Below are positions 41,630 through 51,751 of a stretch of 64,000 nucleotides of DNA, piece by piece. A program made the position numbers and the translations under genes. The notes under the pieces are model-generated. The model did not search any database, had not been told where the DNA came from, and saw nothing but the letters and a program-made list of their open reading frames with translations. The stretch is taken from IMG/VR virus record IMGVR_UViG_3300042566_001780, positions 227,688-291,687 of that record. The stretch is one strand, 5' to 3'. Position 1 is the first letter of the stretch; each line of letters opens with the position of its first letter.

Positions 41630-42967
41630 AACCAATAGCTTATAGATTCCAAATCAAATCTGGTGATTCATGGCAAACTTATCATGCTTCAAATTTGCCA
41701 AAGAATGTCATTCTCAGCAATGTTGTGCCATTATTTGAAAAACCTGTATTTGATCAAGCTTTTCTGAGAACGGTGTTTGAATCTAGTTTGAATTTCAATG
41801 ATTTCTATTCTCAGTTATGTAGCATTCAAATAATGGATCAAGAGCCAGGGGACATCGTGAATAGGCTACTTGCTAGAGCAGCTATTCGAAGGCAAATTTC
41901 TTCAAGAAAAAGCGTTGAGCTCAATGAAAAAGATCGTATTGCAGATCTTCTTGAGGAAGCAGCACATGAAATTATGAAGTTAAGAGGAAAATGACATGAG
42001 CAACAGCCTATCGGCTTTTTTAAAAGATCTTGCGGACTACACAAAAAGATTTATTTTCATGGGCAACAGCGATTATGCAAAGCAAATTATTGAATCAATC
42101 GAAGAACTAAAAAGCCAAGTTGTAGCTCTTTCTAAGCCGAGCCTATTTGCAATTTGCAAACTAAAAGTAGAAAATTCTGCTCAAGAAAAACAAGCATTTG
42201 AGTCGTGGGTGAAGTCAGTTTCGGGAGAAAGTGCTGATTTTTCAACAGATGAAACTGGAAATTATCAGCATCCCGAAATGTATGCTGCTTGGTTAGCGTG
42301 GAACGCAAGAGTGACACAGCAAAACTATGTTAAAATTCCCTATGCAAAGCTAAAGCTTAAATCCATTGACAATGGAATGCCGGACTGCCCGCATTGCGGA
42401 AACAATCGTCAAGTTTGGCGAAATCAGATTACGAACAAGCTCACATGTCACCGTGCATATTGCAACACTGTCATTGAAGAAATGGAAACAAAATGATCAA
42501 GTCTTTTACTCTGAAGCAAATTCCTTCCCATGTTGATCTGGAGCCAGGTGTTACGGTCTACGAGTCTGCTAAGTACGATTATGGTTTGGCAAGTGATGAC
42601 AGTCGATTCACCGGCATTCATCATGTTTCAGTGACTCTTGATCCAACTGGTGACTATCCATTTTTTACGGTTCCTGCACATTTCTTGGAGCCGATTGAGA
42701 ATGTCACAACCTAATTGCCTGCATATTCTTCAGGTTGGCAGATCTTTTGTGGCACTCAAAGATAGTGCTTCTGCAAATCGCTATATAGACCATTATGGAC
42801 TGTCAAAACAAGCAGTCCATCTTGGATGCAAAGAAGTCCATCAATCCTACATTGACATTTTTGAAAAGTGTAAAGTTGATAGAATTGGCTTTGAGCATCT
42901 AGGTCTTTTGCTGCAACCCTCATTTACACCGTTTTTCAAACATGTCCCAACAACCAAAAGTAACTGA
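41626..42967 (+). other. Four small hypothetical ORFs (41626-41994, 41996-42496, 42493-42714, 42701-42967)
   Basis: Coupled ORFs; 41996 ends in a CPHC..C....C zinc ribbon. Confidence 0.55.
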
Positions 42968-44714
42968 CTACGCCGTTCTTGATGAGATTGAACACGTACG
43001 CCGTCGTACTGGCATGTACGCGGGTTCTACTGAACTGCAAACAGCTTCGGACTGGATTTATGATCCTAATCTAAAGAAGATGGTCAAGAAGCAGGTGAGT
43101 TACATTCCTGCTCTTATCAAAATTTTCTCAGAAATTCTCGATAATGCAATCGATGAACACCGTCGTGCTCCAAACGTGCTTGATGCTATTCGGGTAGATT
43201 TCACTGCAGAAGGCATTATCACAATCACTGATAATGGTCGCGGTATTCCAGTTGAAGTCCATCCGCAAACTGGAAAATATATTGCAGAAACTGTGTTCAC
43301 GACGCTGCGTGCAGGTTCTAACTTTGACGATACAAAAGATCAACAACTTGTTGGCACCAATGGCGTTGGTAGTACACTGACATCTATCTTGTCTACCATG
43401 TTTCGCATCGAATCATGTGATGGCAAGAAGGTGTACACGCAAGAATTTAGAAATGGTCTTCGGGAGCGTGATGAACCGAAGATCAAATCTGACAACAAGA
43501 ATCGTACGAAAATTACATTCAAGCCAGATTACGAATTCTTCAAGTTGAAAGGTTTGGACGCCGATCATGCAATGAAGATGACCAAGAAGATTGCAGATGC
43601 CGCTGCATGTAACCCGGGTGTAAAGTTCTACATTAACGGTGATCGAATTGCTGTTAAGGATTTTGGTGACTACATTTCACTATACACTGATGAGTTTGTG
43701 TATGACGATACTCCTGATTGGAAGGTTGGCATCTCTCATTCTGATGGATTTGAGCAAATTAGCTTTGTCAACTCGGTTGAAACATACCAAGGTGGTACAC
43801 ATGTAGCATACGTAATGGATCAAATTGTTGAAGCCATTCGAGCATATATCAAGAAAAAACATAAGGTAGAAGTAAAGCCTGCTGACATCCGCAATCATAT
43901 GCGGGTGTATATTAGTGCCAACGTGAATCGGCCTAAGTTTTCTTCTCAAACAAAAGAGAATATGATTTCTCAATATGGAACTTACAAGACTTCTTGGGAA
44001 GTTCCTGATAAGATGATTCAGAAGCTGCTGAAGTCGCCAATTATTCAATCTGTGCTTGATTGGGTAGAAGCGAAGCAGAAAGCTGCAGAACTTGCAGAAT
44101 TGCGTAAACTCAACAAAGAAGCGGCAAAAGCAAATCCGCGTCGAGTTGAAAAGTTTGATGACGCCATTGAAAAAGTCAATAGGCACCAGTGCCAGATTTT
44201 TTTTACGGAGGGGGACTGCCTTTTTGAGGACACTTTGATTTATTCTCAAGGCAATGGGAATATTAAAATTAAAGATTTGCAAATAGGTGATTTTGTCCTA
44301 ACTCACCAAAACAATTTCAAACAAATAGTTAACAAAACTACTAAGTTAAAAGAGTGTATAAAATTTTGTCTGGAGGATAATAAAATTTTAATTTGTTCAA
44401 AAGAACATAAAATGTTATGTTATTCTAGAAATGACAAATGTTTTGGCTGGGCAACAGCTGAATACATAGCAAATAATCTAGATTCTTTCTATTTGGTAGA
44501 AAATGAGATAATTTCCAAAAGATGCATGGGGGACGAGCTAATAAGTAAGAACCTCCATGATAACGAATTTATTTTAGAATTTGGCAGTGGCCAAACATGG
44601 GAATCTTCACCCAACCACAGGTGGATGGTTTATCAATTAAAAACAAATAGTTTTGTAGTAGTGTCTACAGAAGATATGGAACTTGGCGATATGTTGTTAA
44701 TGAGTATGTCATAA
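42942..44714 (+). CDS. DNA topoisomerase II large subunit, fragment 1 (GHKL ATPase + start of TOPRIM) fused to N-intein
   Basis: EHVRRRTGMYAGS, EILDNAIDE, DNGRGIP, GTNGVG, FFTEGD|CLFEDT (intein Cys1 at 44217). Confidence 0.93.
   Translation: MSQQPKVTDYAVLDEIEHVRRRTGMYAGSTELQTASDWIYDPNLKKMVKKQVSYIPALIKIFSEILDNAIDEHRRAPNVLDAIRVDFTAEGIITITDNGRGIPVEVHPQTGKYIAETVFTTLRAGSNFDDTKDQQLVGTNGVGSTLTSILSTMFRIESCDGKKVYTQEFRNGLRERDEPKIKSDNKNRTKITFKPDYEFFKLKGLDADHAMKMTKKIADAAACNPGVKFYINGDRIAVKDFGDYISLYTDEFVYDDTPDWKVGISHSDGFEQISFVNSVETYQGGTHVAYVMDQIVEAIRAYIKKKHKVEVKPADIRNHMRVYISANVNRPKFSSQTKENMISQYGTYKTSWEVPDKMIQKLLKSPIIQSVLDWVEAKQKAAELAELRKLNKEAAKANPRRVEKFDDAIEKVNRHQCQIFFTEGDCLFEDTLIYSQGNGNIKIKDLQIGDFVLTHQNNFKQIVNKTTKLKECIKFCLEDNKILICSKEHKMLCYSRNDKCFGWATAEYIANNLDSFYLVENEIISKRCMGDELISKNLHDNEFILEFGSGQTWESSPNHRWMVYQLKTNSFVVVSTEDMELGDMLLMSMS
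44217..44711 (+). mobile_element. Split intein, N-terminal half (165 aa)
   Basis: CL..DT.I, IKIKDLQIGDFV, block-B-like S.EH / S..NH motifs, then a stop codon. Confidence 0.88.
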
Positions 44715-44722
44715 AAATAGCG

Positions 44723-44779
44723 CATTTTTTGTCTCCTTCTATAAATATGAATATATTTTACTGAAGGAGACAAAAAATG
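44723..44779 (+). promoter_or_regulatory. Late promoter TATAAATA (44740-44747) inside a 17-bp inverted repeat that masks the endonuclease RBS and ATG
   Basis: CATTTTTTGTCTCCTTC (44723-44739) is the exact reverse complement of GAAGGAGACAAAAAATG (44763-44779). Confidence 0.85.
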
Positions 44780-45886
44780 TCCATGAAACATAACTTTACT
44801 TTTATTGATACCGATCTTCAAAATCCAATTAATTTTGGAATTAATGAAATTACCCAAAAGAATTTAAACAAATCTATATCTTCCAAGTTTAAAAGAATTC
44901 TTAAAAAAGACTTTATTGATTTTCTATTAGCAAAAGTACCTATAGATAAAAAAATATTTTGCAATTGGTGCGGGCGGCCAAATGTAACATGTAAAGGCAT
45001 TTATGGTATAGATTTTTCTAATATGACAGTATCTCTTATGGATATTGAATACTCCAAAAAGTTACACTGTTGTTATGGAACCACAGAATGTCAAAGTAAA
45101 AAATTAAACCCTAATTCTATAGAATTTGTTTCTAAATCAAGAAATTTGTCATTAGAAGAGGCGCGCGAATACATTCTGAATAGAAATAAATCTCCATTCT
45201 ACAGCAGAAATCATAAAACTTTAGATGATTACAAAAAATATCAAGGATCTAGATGCTTTTCAGATGATGTAGAAAGAAATAAAGAGATAATTAATAAACA
45301 AAATTTTTCAAGAAGTTTAGATGGATTTAAGGAAAAATATGGTCCTATTGAAGGACAACAAAAATATGATCTATATCAATCCAAAAAAGCCATAACTTTA
45401 GAAAATCTTATTAAAAAGTATGATGATCCAAAAGTTGCAGAAGAAAAACTTTTATCTTGGAAAAGATCAACATCTTTGACATTGGAAAATTGTATTAGAA
45501 GACATGGACCAGTAGAAGGGCCTAAGTACTATAAAAAATCCGTTGAAAATGGCGGGCTATATAGTACAATAACTTTTGCATATGACGGGTCTGCGTTAAG
45601 GAGTAATAATGAAAGAAAGTTTTATGAATTACTGCTAGTTGCAGGTATCCCTAAAGAAGAAATATTGATAGATAATTGCTATCCAGAAAGTGCATTGCGA
45701 TATGATTTTTTTATAAAATGCTTAGGCATTTTTATAGAGATAGCTGGTATGAATGATGATCAATATAACGAGAAAATGATTCTAAAAAATAAAATATTCA
45801 ATGCATGGATAGTAAGACCGTTAGAGATTGATAAAGCAGCAACTAAAATAATAGAGTATTACAATTTTTTAAAAGAAGAGAAATGA
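44777..45886 (+). CDS. Free-standing putative homing endonuclease (C-terminal PD-(D/E)XK-like domain)
   Basis: Very AT-rich; KYG..EG..KY repeats; C-terminal RS..E...YDF....IFIE..G; lies between the intein halves. Confidence 0.72.
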   Translation: MSMKHNFTFIDTDLQNPINFGINEITQKNLNKSISSKFKRILKKDFIDFLLAKVPIDKKIFCNWCGRPNVTCKGIYGIDFSNMTVSLMDIEYSKKLHCCYGTTECQSKKLNPNSIEFVSKSRNLSLEEAREYILNRNKSPFYSRNHKTLDDYKKYQGSRCFSDDVERNKEIINKQNFSRSLDGFKEKYGPIEGQQKYDLYQSKKAITLENLIKKYDDPKVAEEKLLSWKRSTSLTLENCIRRHGPVEGPKYYKKSVENGGLYSTITFAYDGSALRSNNERKFYELLLVAGIPKEEILIDNCYPESALRYDFFIKCLGIFIEIAGMNDDQYNEKMILKNKIFNAWIVRPLEIDKAATKIIEYYNFLKEEK

Positions 45887-45887
45887 T

Positions 45888-46331
45888 ATGTTTGAGAAAC
45901 TTCTGGATGATTTTGAAACTATTGGGAAAAGATTGGTCAAAATTAATGCTGTAGACTTTGCAGGTCTTGCCAATACAGTTGATATTGAGGTTGAAGATGA
46001 TAATTCATTTACCCTATCAAACGGCCTCATTTCTCATAATTCTGCCCGCTCTTCCATTCAGGCTGCTCGCGGTAAAAACAAGTTTATTGGATCTTTTTCT
46101 CTTCGGGGCAAGCCGCTTAATGTATATGATGCCGAAATTAAGGATGTGATTGCAAATGCTGAATTTGCAAACATGCTTGCTGTTACAGGATTGCAACTTG
46201 GAGAAAAAGTTGAAGCTGAGTCTGATGGAAATTGGCACATCATTGAAATTGACGGTAAAGACGTATTGGTTAATGAAAATGATTTTATTAACATTAACGG
46301 TGATCTTATTAAGGTTAAAAATTTGATCTAG
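45888..46331 (+). CDS. C-intein (51 aa) + topoisomerase II large subunit, fragment 2
   Basis: VDIEVEDDNSFTLSNGLISHN|SARS (Ser+1 at 46041), then LRGKPLNV...TGLQLGE. Confidence 0.92.
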   Translation: MFEKLLDDFETIGKRLVKINAVDFAGLANTVDIEVEDDNSFTLSNGLISHNSARSSIQAARGKNKFIGSFSLRGKPLNVYDAEIKDVIANAEFANMLAVTGLQLGEKVEAESDGNWHIIEIDGKDVLVNENDFININGDLIKVKNLI

Positions 46332-46373
46332 ACTTTGACGGTTATTGCTAAATACATTTTTGAAAGGATAAAA

Positions 46374-47423
46374 ATGAAATGTACTTTATGCAATAATGAA
46401 ATACCAAGCATCTATAAAAATAGAATTGCATGTTGTATTAGTCCGTGTGAGTCATTTTTCATAAAACCAAGAACAATATTATGGAAAATAAAAGTATTGG
46501 GCTTCAATGAACAAAAAGTCCTAGATGAAAACCGTAAAAGAACGCAAAAAGCTGGAAATACGAGAAAATCATTGGGGCTTTCTAAAGGTGCAAATAATCC
46601 AAATAGCAAACAATATTTGTTAAATCTAGGTAAGAGTGAAGATGAAATAGCACAATTTCATAAATCTACTGCCAAAAAAATGGTGGATACAAAAATAAAA
46701 GATGACTTTTATAAGGTAAAATCTAATAATCCATATTCTTATGAATACTGGATATCTCGCGGATATTCAAATGAAGAAGCTAAAAATAAAATAAGATCTA
46801 AAAATCATAATTGTGCCGAATACTGGATATCTCGCGGATATTCAAATGAAGAAGCTAAAAAACTAAGTTCAGAAAGTGCTGATACTAATTCATTAAAAGC
46901 AAAAATCAAAAGACATAAAAATGAAGGTCATAAAAAATATATGGAAACAAAAAATAAAATGTCTGGTAGTTGGAATCCAAAATCTGCAAATAGTGTTAGT
47001 TTTTCATCTTCACAATCAGCAAATGCCTTTTTTAAGAAAATATATAAATTTGTTAGGCGGTTGGGTTTCACTAGACATGAGATGACGTTTAAATTAAATT
47101 TCGGTAAAGAATTTTGGATTAAAAAAGATAAAAAAATTTATTTTTATGATTTTGTTTTGCACCCCCTAAGATTGATAGTAGAATTCAACGGCGAACATGT
47201 TCATGTTGATCCTGGTTTATCTTTAGAAGAAAAATTAAAATGGAAACACGCGTTTTCTAAAATGGATGCTTTTAGTATTGAAGAATATGATAAGCAAAAA
47301 AATATAGCAGCTGCTGCTAGAGGGTATAAAATAATTTATGTCTGGTATAAAGATCAGGAATCTGGATTTAATTCTATTGTTGATTTTTTAAAGGAAAAAT
47401 ATAATCATGGTACAAAAGATTAA
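46374..47423 (+). CDS. Free-standing putative homing endonuclease (Vsr/DUF559-like C-terminus)
   Basis: YDF......IVEFNGEHVH ... D..K...A...GY.IIYVW; YW.SRGYS.EEAK repeats; CTAAATA at 46348-46354. Confidence 0.75.
   Translation: MKCTLCNNEIPSIYKNRIACCISPCESFFIKPRTILWKIKVLGFNEQKVLDENRKRTQKAGNTRKSLGLSKGANNPNSKQYLLNLGKSEDEIAQFHKSTAKKMVDTKIKDDFYKVKSNNPYSYEYWISRGYSNEEAKNKIRSKNHNCAEYWISRGYSNEEAKKLSSESADTNSLKAKIKRHKNEGHKKYMETKNKMSGSWNPKSANSVSFSSSQSANAFFKKIYKFVRRLGFTRHEMTFKLNFGKEFWIKKDKKIYFYDFVLHPLRLIVEFNGEHVHVDPGLSLEEKLKWKHAFSKMDAFSIEEYDKQKNIAAAARGYKIIYVWYKDQESGFNSIVDFLKEKYNHGTKD
46743..46861 (+). repeat. 44-bp perfect direct repeat (46743-46786, 46818-46861)
   Basis: GAATACTGGATATCTCGCGGATATTCAAATGAAGAAGCTAAAAA twice, encoding EYWISRGYSNEEAK. 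Confidence 0.9.
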
Positions 47424-47990
47424 AGTTAAAGCAAAAAATGTTAAGCCAACTCCCGATCAACTGCGAACTTATGTTCAGCAACAAGGACGTTTGACGACTC
47501 GAAATACGAATTTGCGTTTTGGTAAACTGATTGTGCTATCAGACCAAGACCTTGATGGATAGCTTCGGCTATCCATATTACATACACATTTAAAGAGTTA
47601 TTTGGATTTCATGTTTCTTCACTGCTGCTTTCCTTTTGGGCGAAGTACTGGCCAGAGTTGTTCAAACTCGGCATGGTATATCGGATGAACACTCCGCTTT
47701 ATATTGTCAAAACCAATAAGGGCGAACTTTTAGAATTCTTCACTGAAGAAGATTATGAGCGCTGGGCAGCAAAGGGTATCAAACATAAAGCTGACTATTA
47801 CAAAGGTCTTGGCGGTTTTGATACGGAAACTTTTGAGCGATTTATTGAGAATCTTGATAAGTATCTTGTTAAAATTACAGAGCTTGAAGCCCAAGACCTT
47901 GCAAAAATTGAGCTAGCTTTCTCTAACAAAGAGCAAGATGCTCGCAAAGAGTGGCTTGAGGATATTCGATACTTTGAAATTGAAGATTGA
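47407..47990 (+). CDS. Topoisomerase II large subunit, fragment 3 (T4 gp60-like), decoded by a 47-nt translational bypass: join(47407..47559,47607..47990)
   Basis: MVQKIKVKAK...LRFGKLIVLSDQDLDG-TAG, resuming in another frame as FHVSSLLLSFWAKYWPELF...YYKGLG...RKEWL. This restores the DxDxDGxH TOPRIM motif. Confidence 0.9.
47555..47606 (+). promoter_or_regulatory. Ribosome bypass signal (take-off hairpin, coding gap, mini-SD, landing codon)
   Basis: ATGGATAGC-TTCG-GCTATCCAT stem-loop; GAG 47595-47597; GGA 47604-47606. Confidence 0.88.
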
Positions 47991-47995
47991 AAATT

Positions 47996-49336
47996 ATGCT
48001 AAAAACAGAATCAACTGCAACAGAATTTATTGACGAAAAGCTTCGTCTTTACTCTGCTCACTCCAACATTCGAGGTATACCATTTATTGGAGACGGCTTC
48101 AAACAAGCTCACCGAAAGGCTGTTTGGGGTATGCTTAAACGTGGTGAAAATGCCGACAAAGATACTATTGAAAGAATTTCCGCAAGGTCCGCCAGTGACA
48201 CAAACTACGCGCATGGCGTAGGCTCACTTGAAGGCACAATGGTTGGACTGGCGCAGGATTATGCTGGCAGCAACAATATTCCATTGTTTGAAAAGTTTGG
48301 TCAATTTGGTGATCGTCTCAACAAAAAGCCTGCAGCCTCTCGCTACATTAAAGCAAAGCTTGCACCTTACTTTCGTCAGCTTTTCCGCAAAGAAGATGAT
48401 CTCATTTTCGAGTTCATGACTTCAAATGGAATGGAAGTTGAGCCAAAATACTTTACTCCTCTTTTGCCACTTGTTCTGGTAAACGGAGCTGAAGGTATGG
48501 GTACAGGTCATAGCACCTATATTATGGCCTATAATCCAGAAGAGATTAAAACCAACATCATTAAGCTGCTTGATGGCAAGAAACTTAAACCCAACACAAT
48601 GCTTCCATGGTGGAAGGGGTTTAATGGTTCTGTTAGCCGTAATCCAGAAACTAGTCAACTTGAAATTACAGGTTGTTACAACATTAAGGATGGGCGTACA
48701 CCAATTTTGACTGTTACTGAGCTTCCTATCGGCATCCAAAGTGATCAATACAAAGCTCATTTGGACAAGCTTGAAGATCGTGGAATTATTCTCAGTTACG
48801 ATAATCTTTCTGACAAGCGCGGTTTTGAATTCGTTATTCGGATTCCAAAATCCACTGCAGAAAAAACTGATGAAGAAATTAAAAAGCTCTTCAAACTGGC
48901 ATCAAAAGAAACAGAGAACTTGACTGTTTGGGATGGTGATGGTGTCCTTAAACGGTATGAAAATGTCGAGTCACTTCTTGAAGAATGGGTTGAATGGCGT
49001 GTTGCGCGATTTGAGGATCGTCGCCAAGCTCTAATGAAAAAGACCAAAGAAGACATTCTTTGGGCAAGTGAAAAATACAAGTTCATTATTTTCTATCTGA
49101 AGAATGTCAACTTCTTCCGTGATAATGAAACTAAAGTAATTGTTGAGAGGCTTCAAACTGAAGGTTTTACCCGCATTGAAGATCTTCTAAGCATGCCAAT
49201 GCGATCACTCACTAAGCAAAAGATTGAAGAACTCAAGAATGAAGTTGAAAAACTGAAAGTCATTTTGAATGATCTTGAAAATGACAATGCAACTTCAATG
49301 TTTAAACGAGATCTCAAAGAGTTGAAAATAGCATGA
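47996..49336 (+). CDS. DNA topoisomerase II medium subunit (T4 gp52/GyrA-like)
   Basis: DGFKQAHRK, YAHG..SL, AASRYI (catalytic Tyr), LVNGAEGMGTG, ELPIG. Confidence 0.93.
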   Translation: MLKTESTATEFIDEKLRLYSAHSNIRGIPFIGDGFKQAHRKAVWGMLKRGENADKDTIERISARSASDTNYAHGVGSLEGTMVGLAQDYAGSNNIPLFEKFGQFGDRLNKKPAASRYIKAKLAPYFRQLFRKEDDLIFEFMTSNGMEVEPKYFTPLLPLVLVNGAEGMGTGHSTYIMAYNPEEIKTNIIKLLDGKKLKPNTMLPWWKGFNGSVSRNPETSQLEITGCYNIKDGRTPILTVTELPIGIQSDQYKAHLDKLEDRGIILSYDNLSDKRGFEFVIRIPKSTAEKTDEEIKKLFKLASKETENLTVWDGDGVLKRYENVESLLEEWVEWRVARFEDRRQALMKKTKEDILWASEKYKFIIFYLKNVNFFRDNETKVIVERLQTEGFTRIEDLLSMPMRSLTKQKIEELKNEVEKLKVILNDLENDNATSMFKRDLKELKIA

Positions 49337-49555: not shown

Positions 49556-50380
49556 ATGAATGCTTATGAAACGCTAGGTGTCAAACCTGGGACTTCTGCT
49601 GATGATGTCAAAAAGGCATATCGCAAACTTGCTCAAAAATACCATCCCGACAAATATCAAGATGGTCCTGAGAAAATAGAAGCAGAAAAGAAATTCAAAG
49701 AGATTCAAGCTGCATATGAAGAGGTCACAAACCCAAAGCAGCAAAAGAATATGTGGGGGCATGGAAACCCCAATGGCTTTACCGAAATGGATGATATTAT
49801 TCGTGCATTTCGTGAAGCGCATGAAGGTAATTTTCACCAGCGCCGATCAGTCCCAATGATCAACATTCGGCTGTCTCTTAAAGAGGCATTCGAAGGTAAA
49901 AAGATTATGTTGAATATTGATGGAAATAGCATCAATTATCAGATTCGGCCAGGTCTACCATCCGGTGTAGGCTTCATGGATGAAGTGCCTGTTGGTGATG
50001 GTAAAAAGCAAATCAATGTTCGAATTGATATTGTCGACCAAAAGTTTGCATTCAGGCAAATTGGATCTTTTGATGGTATCAATTTTAGCGGCGATCTTGA
50101 AACCGTCATTGATGTTGATGCACTTGATATTCTGTCTGGAAGCTGGATTGAAGTTCAGGATTTCCTTGGAGAAAAGCTTCAAGTGCGAGTACCAAGCGGG
50201 TTCAATGGTGGGCAGATGCTGAAAGTAGCTAATAAAGGTTACTACAACTGGAAGGGTCAAGGATATACAGATCGCGGCCATATGTTTCTTCATGTGCGCC
50301 CGGTCTTCAAAGCAAAGCATGAAATCAATAAAGATAAACTGAAGAAGCTTTATGACGAAGTCTGCGGTGCAAATGCCTAA
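49556..50380 (+). CDS. DnaJ/CbpA-like co-chaperone
   Basis: J domain with HPD; C-terminal DnaJ_C-like region; no zinc finger. Confidence 0.88.
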
Positions 50381-50891
50381 TGACATTTCAGGTATTTCTT
50401 TTTCGCAAAAGAAATTGGTGAAAGTTATTTCTGGAGGTCAGACTGGTGTAGACCAAGCTGGTCTTTTTGCCGCTATTTCTTGCGGATTGGAAACCGGTGG
50501 GCAAGCTCCTGAAAACTATTTAACCAGTGCAGGCAATTTCCCAATGTTAGAATTATTTGGATTGACTGCCGATGGAAATTACTATGAGCGCACTGGGGCT
50601 AATGTCAAAAATTCCGATGGTACTATCATTATTGCGGAAGATTTGACCTCTGCAGGTTCTAGCGCCACAAGGCGCTTTTGCGCTCGAATAAATAAACCAT
50701 GCTTAGAAATCGAATTACAAAATTTGACCTTCACTACAGCTCATGTGATTGAAATTTGCGAATTCATCACTGCTAAAGAAATTTCAATTTTGAACGTCGC
50801 CGGGAATCGAGAGCGCTACAAAAATAATGCAGTTTTTTCTTGCGCAAAAAAATTGTTGACAGAAGTTTTCACCACACTTAAGCAATTATGA
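50373..50891 (+). CDS. SLOG / putative molybdenum-carrier-like protein
   Basis: [31 protein letters not shown]. Confidence 0.82.
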
Positions 50892-51751
50892 CTTCACAAA
50901 CTTTCGAATATAATCTCCTCAACCTGTATCATGACATTCTTCAGAATGGCGATGAGCGAATTGATCGCACGGGCGTAGGCACTCTTTCAGTTTTTGGTCG
51001 ACAACTTCGAATCAATCTTCAAGATGGATTTCCGTTAGTCACTACTAAGAAGATGGGATTTAAGTCCATTCTGGCAGAACTTCTTTGGTTCATTGAAGGT
51101 AGCTGCGATGAGCGCCGCCTTGCAGAAATTCTACATGGGACACGTGATGTGTCCAAGAAAACTATCTGGACTGCAAATGCCGAAGCTCCATACTGGAAGT
51201 CTAAAGCAAATTTTGAAGGTGATTTAGGTCGCGTGTATGGTGTGCAATGGCGTACATGGCATGGTCATGATGATGTTTATGTTGATCAACTCCAAAATAT
51301 CATTAATACCCTCAAGACAGACCCAACAAATCGCCGCATGATTTTATCTGCATGGAACGTAGGTGAGCTTGACATGATGGCACTTCCGCCGTGCCATATG
51401 TTTGCGCAGTTTTTTGTGTCACAGAAAAAACTGTCATGTCAAATGTATCAGCGCTCAGTTGATAGTTTCTTAGGTCTCCCATATAACATCTCATCTTATG
51501 CACTGCTCACGCATATCATTGCAAAGATCTGTGATCTAGAAGCTGGTGAGCTTATTATGTGTCTTGGCGATACTCACATCTACAAGAATCACATTGACCA
51601 AGTCAAACAACAAATTGCTCGTACGCCATTTGAATTGTCGAAGCTTTCTATTTCTGATAGCATAAAAAGTCTTGATGATCTGAAGATGGAACATTTTTCT
51701 ATTACTGATTATCAATATCATCCTGCTATAGTTGCTGAAATGGCAGTGTGA
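50888..51751 (+). CDS. thyA: Thymidylate synthase
   Basis: DRTGVGT, YGVQWR, MALPPCH, YQRSVD.FLGLPYN, GDTHIY.NH. Confidence 0.95.
   Translation: MTSQTFEYNLLNLYHDILQNGDERIDRTGVGTLSVFGRQLRINLQDGFPLVTTKKMGFKSILAELLWFIEGSCDERRLAEILHGTRDVSKKTIWTANAEAPYWKSKANFEGDLGRVYGVQWRTWHGHDDVYVDQLQNIINTLKTDPTNRRMILSAWNVGELDMMALPPCHMFAQFFVSQKKLSCQMYQRSVDSFLGLPYNISSYALLTHIIAKICDLEAGELIMCLGDTHIYKNHIDQVKQQIARTPFELSKLSISDSIKSLDDLKMEHFSITDYQYHPAIVAEMAV

Follow-up and report, generated by a model that had tools for sequence, protein, structure and literature searches.

How could a phage obtain an intact large subunit of its type II DNA topoisomerase from a gene that is interrupted at three points? The locus that raises this question lies in the final 64 kb of IMGVR_UViG_3300042566_001780, a 291,687-bp record of an uncultured virus that is described as a jumbo phage and has a CheckV completeness of 82%; this whole 64,000-nucleotide stretch is referred to below as the window. 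We consider it very probable that two independent selfish elements sit in the TOPRIM part of this one essential gene, each with its own route for preserving the enzyme. The first appears to be a fractured-gene intein, the halves of which would associate and trans-splice fragment 1 of the large subunit to fragment 2. The second appears to be a bypass cassette of the MobA type, in which the HNH nuclease would have been swapped for a Vsr-like protein encoded by open reading frame (ORF) B. The spliced product (the equivalent of T4 gp39) and fragment 3 (the equivalent of gp60) would then assemble non-covalently with the gp52-like subunit. The analysis deals with the anatomy of the locus, homology, presence and absence among relatives, conservation and covariation, and the predicted nuclease fold. 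Every feature listed by an original prediction for this DNA was found where that prediction had placed it.

The features of the locus, in window coordinates, are as follows.

42942-44216, + strand: N-extein of the large subunit, comprising the GHKL ATPase, the transducer and the first strand of TOPRIM, up to 'FFTEGD' (Pfam DNA_gyraseB, 2e-23; HATPase_c, 1.7e-9)
44217-44714, + strand: putative split-intein N-half of 165 aa and a stop codon; Cys1 in 'CLFEDT' (44217-44711), block B 'SKEH', sub-threshold Hint_2 and Intein_splicing matches
44722-44780, + strand: predicted 18-bp hairpin sequestering a ribosome-binding site (RBS), with the GGAG Shine-Dalgarno sequence and AUG of ORF-A buried in its 3' arm and TATAAATA (44740-44747) in its loop
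44777-45886, + strand: ORF-A, a free-standing putative homing endonuclease of 369 aa, in which a Cys4 zinc finger and helical repeats accompany a C-terminal PD-(D/E)xK-type domain
45888-46040, + strand: putative split-intein C-half (51 aa), with 'DIEVEDDNSF' as block F and 'SHN' as block G (ending 'LISHN'), aligned to Intein_splicing model positions 122-155
46041-46211, + strand: middle TOPRIM segment (the intein's C-extein), 57 aa, host-derived up to 'GLQLGEKV' and 86-87% identical to relatives L059 and L055
46212-46331, + strand: C-terminal extension (CTE, a candidate docking tail) of 39 aa and a stop codon, with homology to the C-terminal end of T4 gp39
46374-47423, + strand: ORF-B, a Vsr-like (EDxHD-type) putative homing endonuclease of 349 aa; ATG with an AAGGA RBS, TTG 46335 as a possible alternative start
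47407-47511, + strand: unique part of the N-terminal extension (NTE, or arm), 35 aa; overlaps the end of ORF-B by 17 nt in another frame, candidate nascent-peptide signal
47512-47559, + strand: homR, 'LRFGKLIVLSDQDLDG', the TOPRIM DxD strand, ending in the putative take-off GGA (47557-47559) and colinear with parental 'LRFGKLVVLSD.DLDG'
47560-47606, + strand: putative coding gap of 47 nt; UAG 47560-62, take-off stem-loop 47555-47576, GAG 47595-97, landing GGA 47604-06
47607-47990, + strand: remainder of the large subunit (end of TOPRIM and TOPRIM_C domain), which would be read after landing (Pfam TOPRIM_C, 1.3e-18)
47987-49336, + strand: topoisomerase II medium subunit, gp52-like (Pfam DNA_topoisoIV, 5.4e-80)

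A putative split intein at the first break

Fragment 1 (42942-44714, 590 aa) consists of the N-extein and the N-intein. Its N-extein is 30% identical to T4 gp39 and 66-75% identical to relatives that are unsplit or carry the intein only, and the intein enters directly after the catalytic 'EGD' motif. Fragment 2 (45888-46331, 147 aa) opens with the C-intein, continues with TOPRIM sequence ('SARSSIQAARGKN...GLQLGEKV') that is colinear with unsplit proteins and ends in the 39-aa tail. Pfam Hint and Intein matches to both halves fall below the curated cut-off. The residues expected of an intein are invariant in the four alleles compared, the N-halves of which are only 32-56% identical: C1, S61 and H64 (block B, S61-x-x-H64) in the N-half, and D32, S49, H50 and N51 with Ser+1 in the C-half. 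From this conservation we infer that fragments 1 and 2 are joined by protein trans-splicing.

The two halves are separately encoded. Fragment 1 stops at 44712-14, ORF-A begins 62 nt downstream in another frame, and fragment 2 starts from an ATG of its own (45888). This three-ORF layout of N-intein, nuclease and C-intein is common to L059, L060 and the P0029 contig, the last of which, like the P0011 contig considered below, is known by its gene table alone rather than by DNA. Homologues of ORF-A number 27, and in each of the three contexts examined the gene is flanked by the two intein halves of a topoisomerase large subunit. In L055, a contig from Logan SRR28201389 and the closest relative of the window, the intein halves adjoin (stop at 735, start at 738 within L055:1-1175) with no nuclease between them. 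The L055 N-intein is only 32% identical to that of the window, though the flanking exteins are 87-95% identical; two intein lineages, a window/L059 type and an L060/L055 type, occupy the identical site.

The RBS and start codon of ORF-A would be locked in the hairpin at 44722-44780, which has a minimum free energy of -30.2 kcal/mol (z = -7.1), a stability reached by 0 of 200 shuffled sequences. L059 has a hairpin of the same design, again with TATAAATA, and the outer stem bases covary; an Rfam scan of the window hairpin returned spurious miRNA matches only. Dassa et al. (2009, NAR 37:2560), who defined fractured genes, included in their description an RBS-sequestering hairpin, often with TATAAATA. 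The window shares this hairpin with those genes, as well as the abutment of the nuclease 3' end on the start of the downstream half. It differs in its host gene, topoisomerase being absent from their eight host enzymes (0 mentions), and in that the Vsr-likeness of ORF-A comes from profile-profile homology to ORF-B rather than from a direct strong match.

A probable bypass cassette with a Vsr-like nuclease at the second break

Manning & Atkins (bioRxiv 10.1101/2022.08.31.505936) described the MobA element as a block of CTE, nuclease, NTE/homR and bypass that has been inserted repeatedly in the topoisomerase II large subunit (Topo2L) at residues ~466-491, and reported GIY-YIG and VSR replacements of MobA in clades 9-11. 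The ORF-B cassette fits such a block at that site, apart from the HNH nuclease, and corresponds to the published VSR-replacement variant. It would have brought the 39-aa tail, the nuclease gene, the 35-aa arm, a DxD strand copy of its own and an untranslated gap of 47 nt. We compared nine cassettes: seven of the Vsr type (the window, L055, L056, L057/58, L141, L142 and L143, the last six obtained through ORF-B homologues) together with those of T4 and Proteus phage SJ_PmiM. Boundaries were mapped against the parental sequences of L059, L060, L043 and L046, and ~5 residues are replaced at the cassette site relative to unsplit proteins.

The tail is clearly homologous to that of T4. Fragment 2 aligns with the C-terminus of T4 gp39, which ends '...GEKAFEEKEDGEWFTFELNGDTIIVNENDEVQINGKWITVGELRKNL', at 44% identity over 80 residues (E = 1e-18), around a core of 'DG.W...E..G....VNEND..I.G'. 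This likeness, which the original prediction had proposed and had named as a test of itself, is borne out by alignment. In a tblastn search with the fragment 2 extein, the top phage matches were cassette-bearing Tequatrovirus and Proteus phages, and CTE residues W65, G72, N78, D81 and V92 are invariant in all nine cassettes. As for the arm, BLAST sees no similarity between it and residues 1-46 of T4 gp60, yet K6, Y22 (the equivalent of T4 Y16) and the D.D.DG run are kept in 9/9 cassettes, and S45 corresponds to T4 T40. We regard the tail and arm as insertions because uninterrupted relatives have neither; the CTE is missing from L059, L060, L043, L046 and BUDD, all unsplit at the 39/60 position, and the arm from unsplit homologues. 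The gp39- and gp60-equivalents would reassemble non-covalently through these tails. Manning & Atkins (10.1101/2022.08.31.505936) noted that Campylobacter phages keep the tail alone, and in our comparison CP20 has the tail only.

Pfam, PHROGs and PDB sequence searches named neither nuclease, and ORF-B had no HNH Pfam match; both identities come from structure prediction with VIA-align and from profile-profile comparison. The ORF-B model has a predicted local distance difference test score of 86.7, and its C-terminal domain (residues 211-344) follows a Cys cluster and helical repeats. In VIA-align this domain matches the DUF559 protein 3HRL (Z 9.1, root mean square deviation (rmsd) 2.3 Å over 90/94 residues), Vsr (1CW0, Z 8.7; 1VSR, Z 8.0) and the catalytic domain of I-Bth0305I (3R3P, Z 8.4, rmsd 2.6 Å over 94/97 residues). 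The top Foldseek matches are all Vsr-like domains, with weak E values (0.1-0.9). Across 20 homologues, residues E246, D259, E270, N272, H277 and K309 do not vary, consistent with an EDxHD motif as matched to Vsr by motif spacing rather than by residue-level superposition. The predicted fold of ORF-B is that of Vsr, DUF559 and I-Bth0305I, not HNH, in line with the Vsr/DUF559-like motif that the original prediction noted at the split where T4 has the HNH nuclease MobA. In sequence profiles ORF-A and ORF-B form one superfamily (99.5%, E = 7e-23 over 294 columns), with a common layout of Cys cluster, helical repeats and nuclease domain. On direct evidence, which includes a Bax1 match at E = 1e-3, ORF-A is only 'PD-(D/E)xK-like'. 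A weaker hairpin (46341-46397, z = -2.1) holds the ORF-B AAGGA RBS and ATG 46374 in its loop and 3' arm, and may be a milder form of the translational lock on ORF-A.

Bypass signals at the coding gap

Fragment 3 starts at 47407 with the arm and continues through 'LRFGKLIVLSDQDLDG' to 'DQDLDG', ending at GGA 47557-59 directly before TAG. After the second GGA, the frame runs on as 'FHVSSLLLSFWAKYWPELF...' to 47990, and joining GGA to GGA restores colinearity with unsplit homologues ('DLDG/FHVSSLLLSFWAK.WPELF', the slash marking the join); the uninterrupted downstream TOPRIM of L059 reads '...GLQLGEKVKSVRDLRFGKLVVLSDSDLDGFHVSSLLLSFWAKFWPELF...'. The segment beyond the gap is 31% identical to T4 gp60 beyond its own gap and 89% identical to L055. 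The frame resumes exactly after GGA 47604-06, as expected from the gap of 47 nt that the original prediction had proposed. The window reads GAT GGA TAG CTTCGGCTATCC ... AAGAGTTATTT GGA in this region, and T4 reads GAT GGA TAG CCTTCGGGCTATCT ... AAGAGATTATT GGA. The window take-off stem comprises 9 bp with a UUCG loop, and in the AU-rich gap a GAG resembling a Shine-Dalgarno sequence sits 6 nt before the landing GGA.

The same signals recur throughout the nine cassettes. All have a UAG right behind a GGN take-off codon, a stem capped by a tetraloop, a landing GGN decoded by the same tRNA (GGA/GGA in three, GGU/GGU in two, GGU/GGC in three and GGG/GGA in one) and a Shine-Dalgarno-like triplet that begins 9 nt ahead of the landing codon; their gaps measure 45-51 nt (45-48 nt in the seven Vsr-type cassettes). 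Changes at the third position of the take-off codon are matched by covarying changes in its stem partner (UA in five, AU in three, GC in one), and the aligned stem positions are 95.6% paired, as against 18-41% when the partner is slid. Among the Vsr-type cassettes the tetraloops are UUCG, GCAA, GAAA and UAAG, the codon pairs are GGA/GGA, GGU/GGU and GGU/GGC, and the arm sequences differ too. Seven independent assemblies are alike in this way, and the anatomy is not a product of chance. When IMG/VR was scanned for the exact pattern of the take-off hairpin, 36 loci came up, most of them terminator-like and none behind a D.D.DG codon run; we judge this pattern too strict or too non-specific as a cassette finder.

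By homology to T4, peptidyl-tRNA-Gly would depart from GGA 47557-59 at the UAG as the take-off hairpin forms, and the ribosome would slide 47 nt and re-pair at GGA 47604-06, with the GAG 6 nt upstream as its guide. We infer from the conserved signals and the T4 analogy that ribosomes hop the gap at 47560-47606.

Two elements that occur independently

The combinations found among relatives separate the intein from the cassette. Thirteen IMG/VR relatives of the N-extein (L042-L054) have neither element, with no intein, tail, nuclease, arm or gap. L059 and L060, which have an ORF-A homologue and an undivided downstream TOPRIM, carry the intein only, as does the P0029 contig; L056, L057/58, L141, L142 and L143 carry the cassette only, as does the P0011 contig; and the window and L055 carry both. 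Because all four states are found, the two elements are independent. Seven loci have the tail, nuclease, arm and gap together, and all four are missing together from the 13 unsplit relatives and from L059 and L060. The original prediction that the split, tails and bypass insert form one mobile cassette is supported by this pattern; the intein is a separate second element outside the cassette. Its proposal of an exchangeable nuclease agrees with the comparison: the T4 and Proteus phage cassettes have HNH nucleases and the other seven Vsr-like ones, while the homology of the tails and of the gap extends over the two types.

A recent transfer of the cassette from T4-like phages was considered and rejected: the tail is only ~44% identical, and cassette divergence roughly tracks that of the host genes.

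Relation to known systems

The locus shares with T4 mobA/gene 39-60 (NC_000866) the TOPRIM break point, the homologous gp39 tail, an N-terminal arm on gp60, GGA for take-off and landing, the UAG, the UUCG stem-loop, the GAG 6 nt before landing and the overlap of the nuclease gene with the arm start. It differs in its nuclease (HNH in T4), in the gap (50 nt in T4, 47 nt here), in a stem one pair shorter at the loop and in its host, a distant jumbo phage with a topoisomerase ~30% identical to that of T4. Closer counterparts are MGS11 and MGS12 of clade 11 in Manning & Atkins (10.1101/2022.08.31.505936), which have a Vsr-like nuclease with the core 'FYDF...EFNGEHVHP' at the 39/60 break, a CTE and NTE of like style and a phage topoisomerase lineage marked by 'YQVLDEI.HVR.RTGMYAGS'. 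They are listed with GAU (MGS11) and GGU/GGC (MGS12), whereas the window has GGA/GGA and adds a split intein. Window peptides are absent from the supplementary files of that preprint, and the locus is therefore a further instance, nearest to clade 11.

The combination with an intein has also been reported. In MGS5, an intein with a VSR nuclease splits ORF1 as well (10.1101/2022.08.31.505936), so that one large-subunit gene would need protein splicing, non-covalent reassembly and bypass, as in the window; at its 39/60 break MGS5 has a GIY-YIG nuclease, whereas both window nucleases are of the Vsr-like superfamily. MGS5, MGS2 and MGS50 share the intein site 'EGD/SA' and a C-intein ending 'ISHN', but MGS50 has neither nuclease nor bypass, and MGS2 was read by the authors as a possible misassembly. 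The 146-aa ORF1 of MGS2 (Supplementary Table S2) has the N-terminus '...HTFLLGNGIISHN/SA', a C-intein half like that of fragment 2, and on this sequence MGS2 is more likely a fractured gene than a misassembly. Because the 2022 preprint already reports the arrangement of intein, cassette and bypass, the locus is a new example of it and not a new kind.

Two further systems offer partial parallels. I-Bth0305I, the EDxHD prototype (PDB 3R3P), has a catalytic domain on which the C-terminal domain of ORF-B superposes, and the motif Asp, Glu and His are conserved in ORF-B. I-Bth0305I is encoded by an intron in recA, whereas ORF-B stands on its own within a cassette of tails and bypass, and its protein has a Cys cluster at the N-terminus as well as helical repeats. 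In the account given by Manning & Atkins (10.1101/2022.08.31.505936), Aeh1 nrdA/mobE likewise has a homing nuclease splitting an essential gene, with added C- and N-terminal tails and non-covalent reassembly, but in another gene, with an HNH nuclease and, in that account, no bypass.

Alternative explanations and points against

Three interruptions within ~240 bp of coding sequence could suggest a decaying pseudogene in a phage that relies on a host topoisomerase or another one, all the more so in a record that is only 82% complete. We regard this as very improbable, since all the pieces are full-length open frames colinear with intact homologues, diverged relatives retain the catalytic residues of the intein and the bypass signals, with compensatory changes, the gp52-like partner gene is intact, and the architecture persists in L055 at 59-95% identity. 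That the stops and gap are errors of a metagenomic assembly, or that the gap is removed from the RNA by a tiny intron or by editing, is a most improbable account: the seven independent assemblies come from different samples and have a 45-48-nt gap at one and the same codon, along with like signals, the gap is homologous to the experimentally proven gap of T4 gene 60, an Rfam scan at the gap matched no intron or other RNA family, and 47 nt is well under the size of a self-splicing intron. Almost negligible is the chance that the intein is effectively contiguous, with ORF-A translated within it and splicing in cis. In-frame nucleases are usual for inteins, but here ORF-A has its own frame, RBS and hairpin between a stop and a new ATG, L059, L060 and the P0029 contig have the same layout, and in L055 the halves are separate ORFs even without a nuclease between them.

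ORF-B could be a passenger or a secondary invader that replaced MobA and has ceased to drive homing of the cassette or never drove it, the gap being a relic unrelated to its target; we think this unlikely, while giving it real weight. Three unrelated nuclease families (the HNH, the GIY-YIG and the Vsr-like one) occupy the same cassette, some published cassettes have a gap but no nuclease (10.1101/2022.08.31.505936), and ORF-B diverges faster than its flanks. Moreover, the specificity of I-Bth0305I is highest over the central 14 bp at its own insertion and cleavage site (Taylor et al. 2011, NAR 39:9705), and by this rule the ORF-B site would fall ~60 bp upstream of the gap. The same enzyme contacts up to 60 bp (Taylor et al. 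2011), however, so that a gap ~60 bp away could still matter. Also against the passenger reading, the catalytic E, D and H are invariant in the 20 homologues, and all eight ORF-B homologues whose context was examined lie at exactly this break, which points to site-specific spread or to long co-inheritance. According to Manning & Atkins, who cite Bonocora et al. (2011, PNAS 108:16351), the gap protects T4 from MobA; by analogy with MobA, the window gap may protect its allele from ORF-B.

Several observations weigh against the reading of two independent selfish elements, or against parts of it. The phage is an uncultured IMG/VR record, and its splicing and hopping are predictions from sequence. 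A complex prediction for tail, arm and fragment 3b, computed with window sequences only, scored 0.24, below the 0.34 mark, a result that we take as evidence neither for nor against docking of tail and arm. Uninterrupted alleles more than 95% identical were looked for and none was found, so recent mobility is unsupported, and ORF-B is 59% identical between L055 and the window, against 84-95% in the flanks. The final Asp of the EDxHD motif (about D305) is kept in most but not all ORF-B homologues, and the ORF-A model has weak PD-(D/E)xK matches (Foldseek E of 0.1 or worse). Finally, TATAAATA is not enriched in the window (3 observed, 2.4 expected). Its use as a phage-wide late-promoter mark was rejected as unsupported by this frequency; what support it has is limited to its conservation inside the hairpin.

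Neighbouring genes and other elements of the genome

The gp52-like subunit has its best phage match, at 38% identity, in Xanthomonas phage BUDD and is <30% identical to those of T4-like phages; near and distant searches of INPHARED phage DNA found no match, and the window has no sequenced close relative there. Genes for a DnaJ-like protein, a cpYpsA-like protein and thymidylate synthase follow the topoisomerase (49556-51751) in an order kept in L055 and L056, with two DnaJ-like genes in L055 and one in the window. The topoisomerase genes are mosaic in a comparison of L042/L045/L048 with L046: the identity of L042 to the window is 68% over the N-extein but 40-48% over TOPRIM and gp52, whereas L046 shows the opposite pattern (47% in the N-extein, 53-67% in TOPRIM and gp52). 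These sequences suggest within-gene recombination near the TOPRIM insertion hot-spot.

Elsewhere in the same genome (G000:C1), a terminase large-subunit gene at ~84.1-87.4 kb (L157) is fractured inside its Walker A motif ('SRQLGK/C...'), with an N-half of ~41 aa, a long C-half ending 'ILSHN/TTV' and a 384-aa nuclease of the ORF-B family between them (E = 5.8e-32). We take this terminase intein to resemble the atypical AceL-TerL split intein. A UvsX/RecA-like gene at ~101.3-104.3 kb (L145) is fractured in its P-loop ('FAGPSG/C...' ... 'SSHN/SGKSF'), with a short N-intein half and, between the halves, a 413-aa nuclease that is the closest ORF-B paralogue in the genome (E = 2.6e-48). Further Intein_splicing matches lie in a 908-aa frame on the + strand (~108.3-108.6 kb) and in a 662-aa frame on the - strand (~8.1-8.4 kb). 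The former passes the curated cut-off when neighbouring in-frame matches are counted, which suggests that this phage has one or more additional genes with an intein.

Implications

The current picture, as set out in the 2022 preprint, is unchanged by this locus, which offers a compact case of an essential phage gene tolerating stacked selfish elements. The Vsr-like superfamily is present in the topoisomerase, terminase and UvsX-like genes of one genome. A speculative and rather improbable extension is that the bypass cassette acts as a 'landing pad' that is indifferent to its nuclease and was captured here by a Vsr-like superfamily riding the split inteins of the phage, the nuclease having moved between two vehicles of self-repair. 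If so, the gap would serve successive occupants, either as target-site immunity or through a function of its own, such as subunit stoichiometry.

More broadly, programmed ribosome hopping over 50 nt was for long a curiosity of T4 alone. The locus and the six further Vsr-type cassettes constitute natural variants in gap length, tetraloop, codon pair and arm, and their origin in phages distant from T4 makes them useful for testing how bypass works. A natural split intein and a Vsr-like homing nuclease, both new, may also be obtained from this locus.

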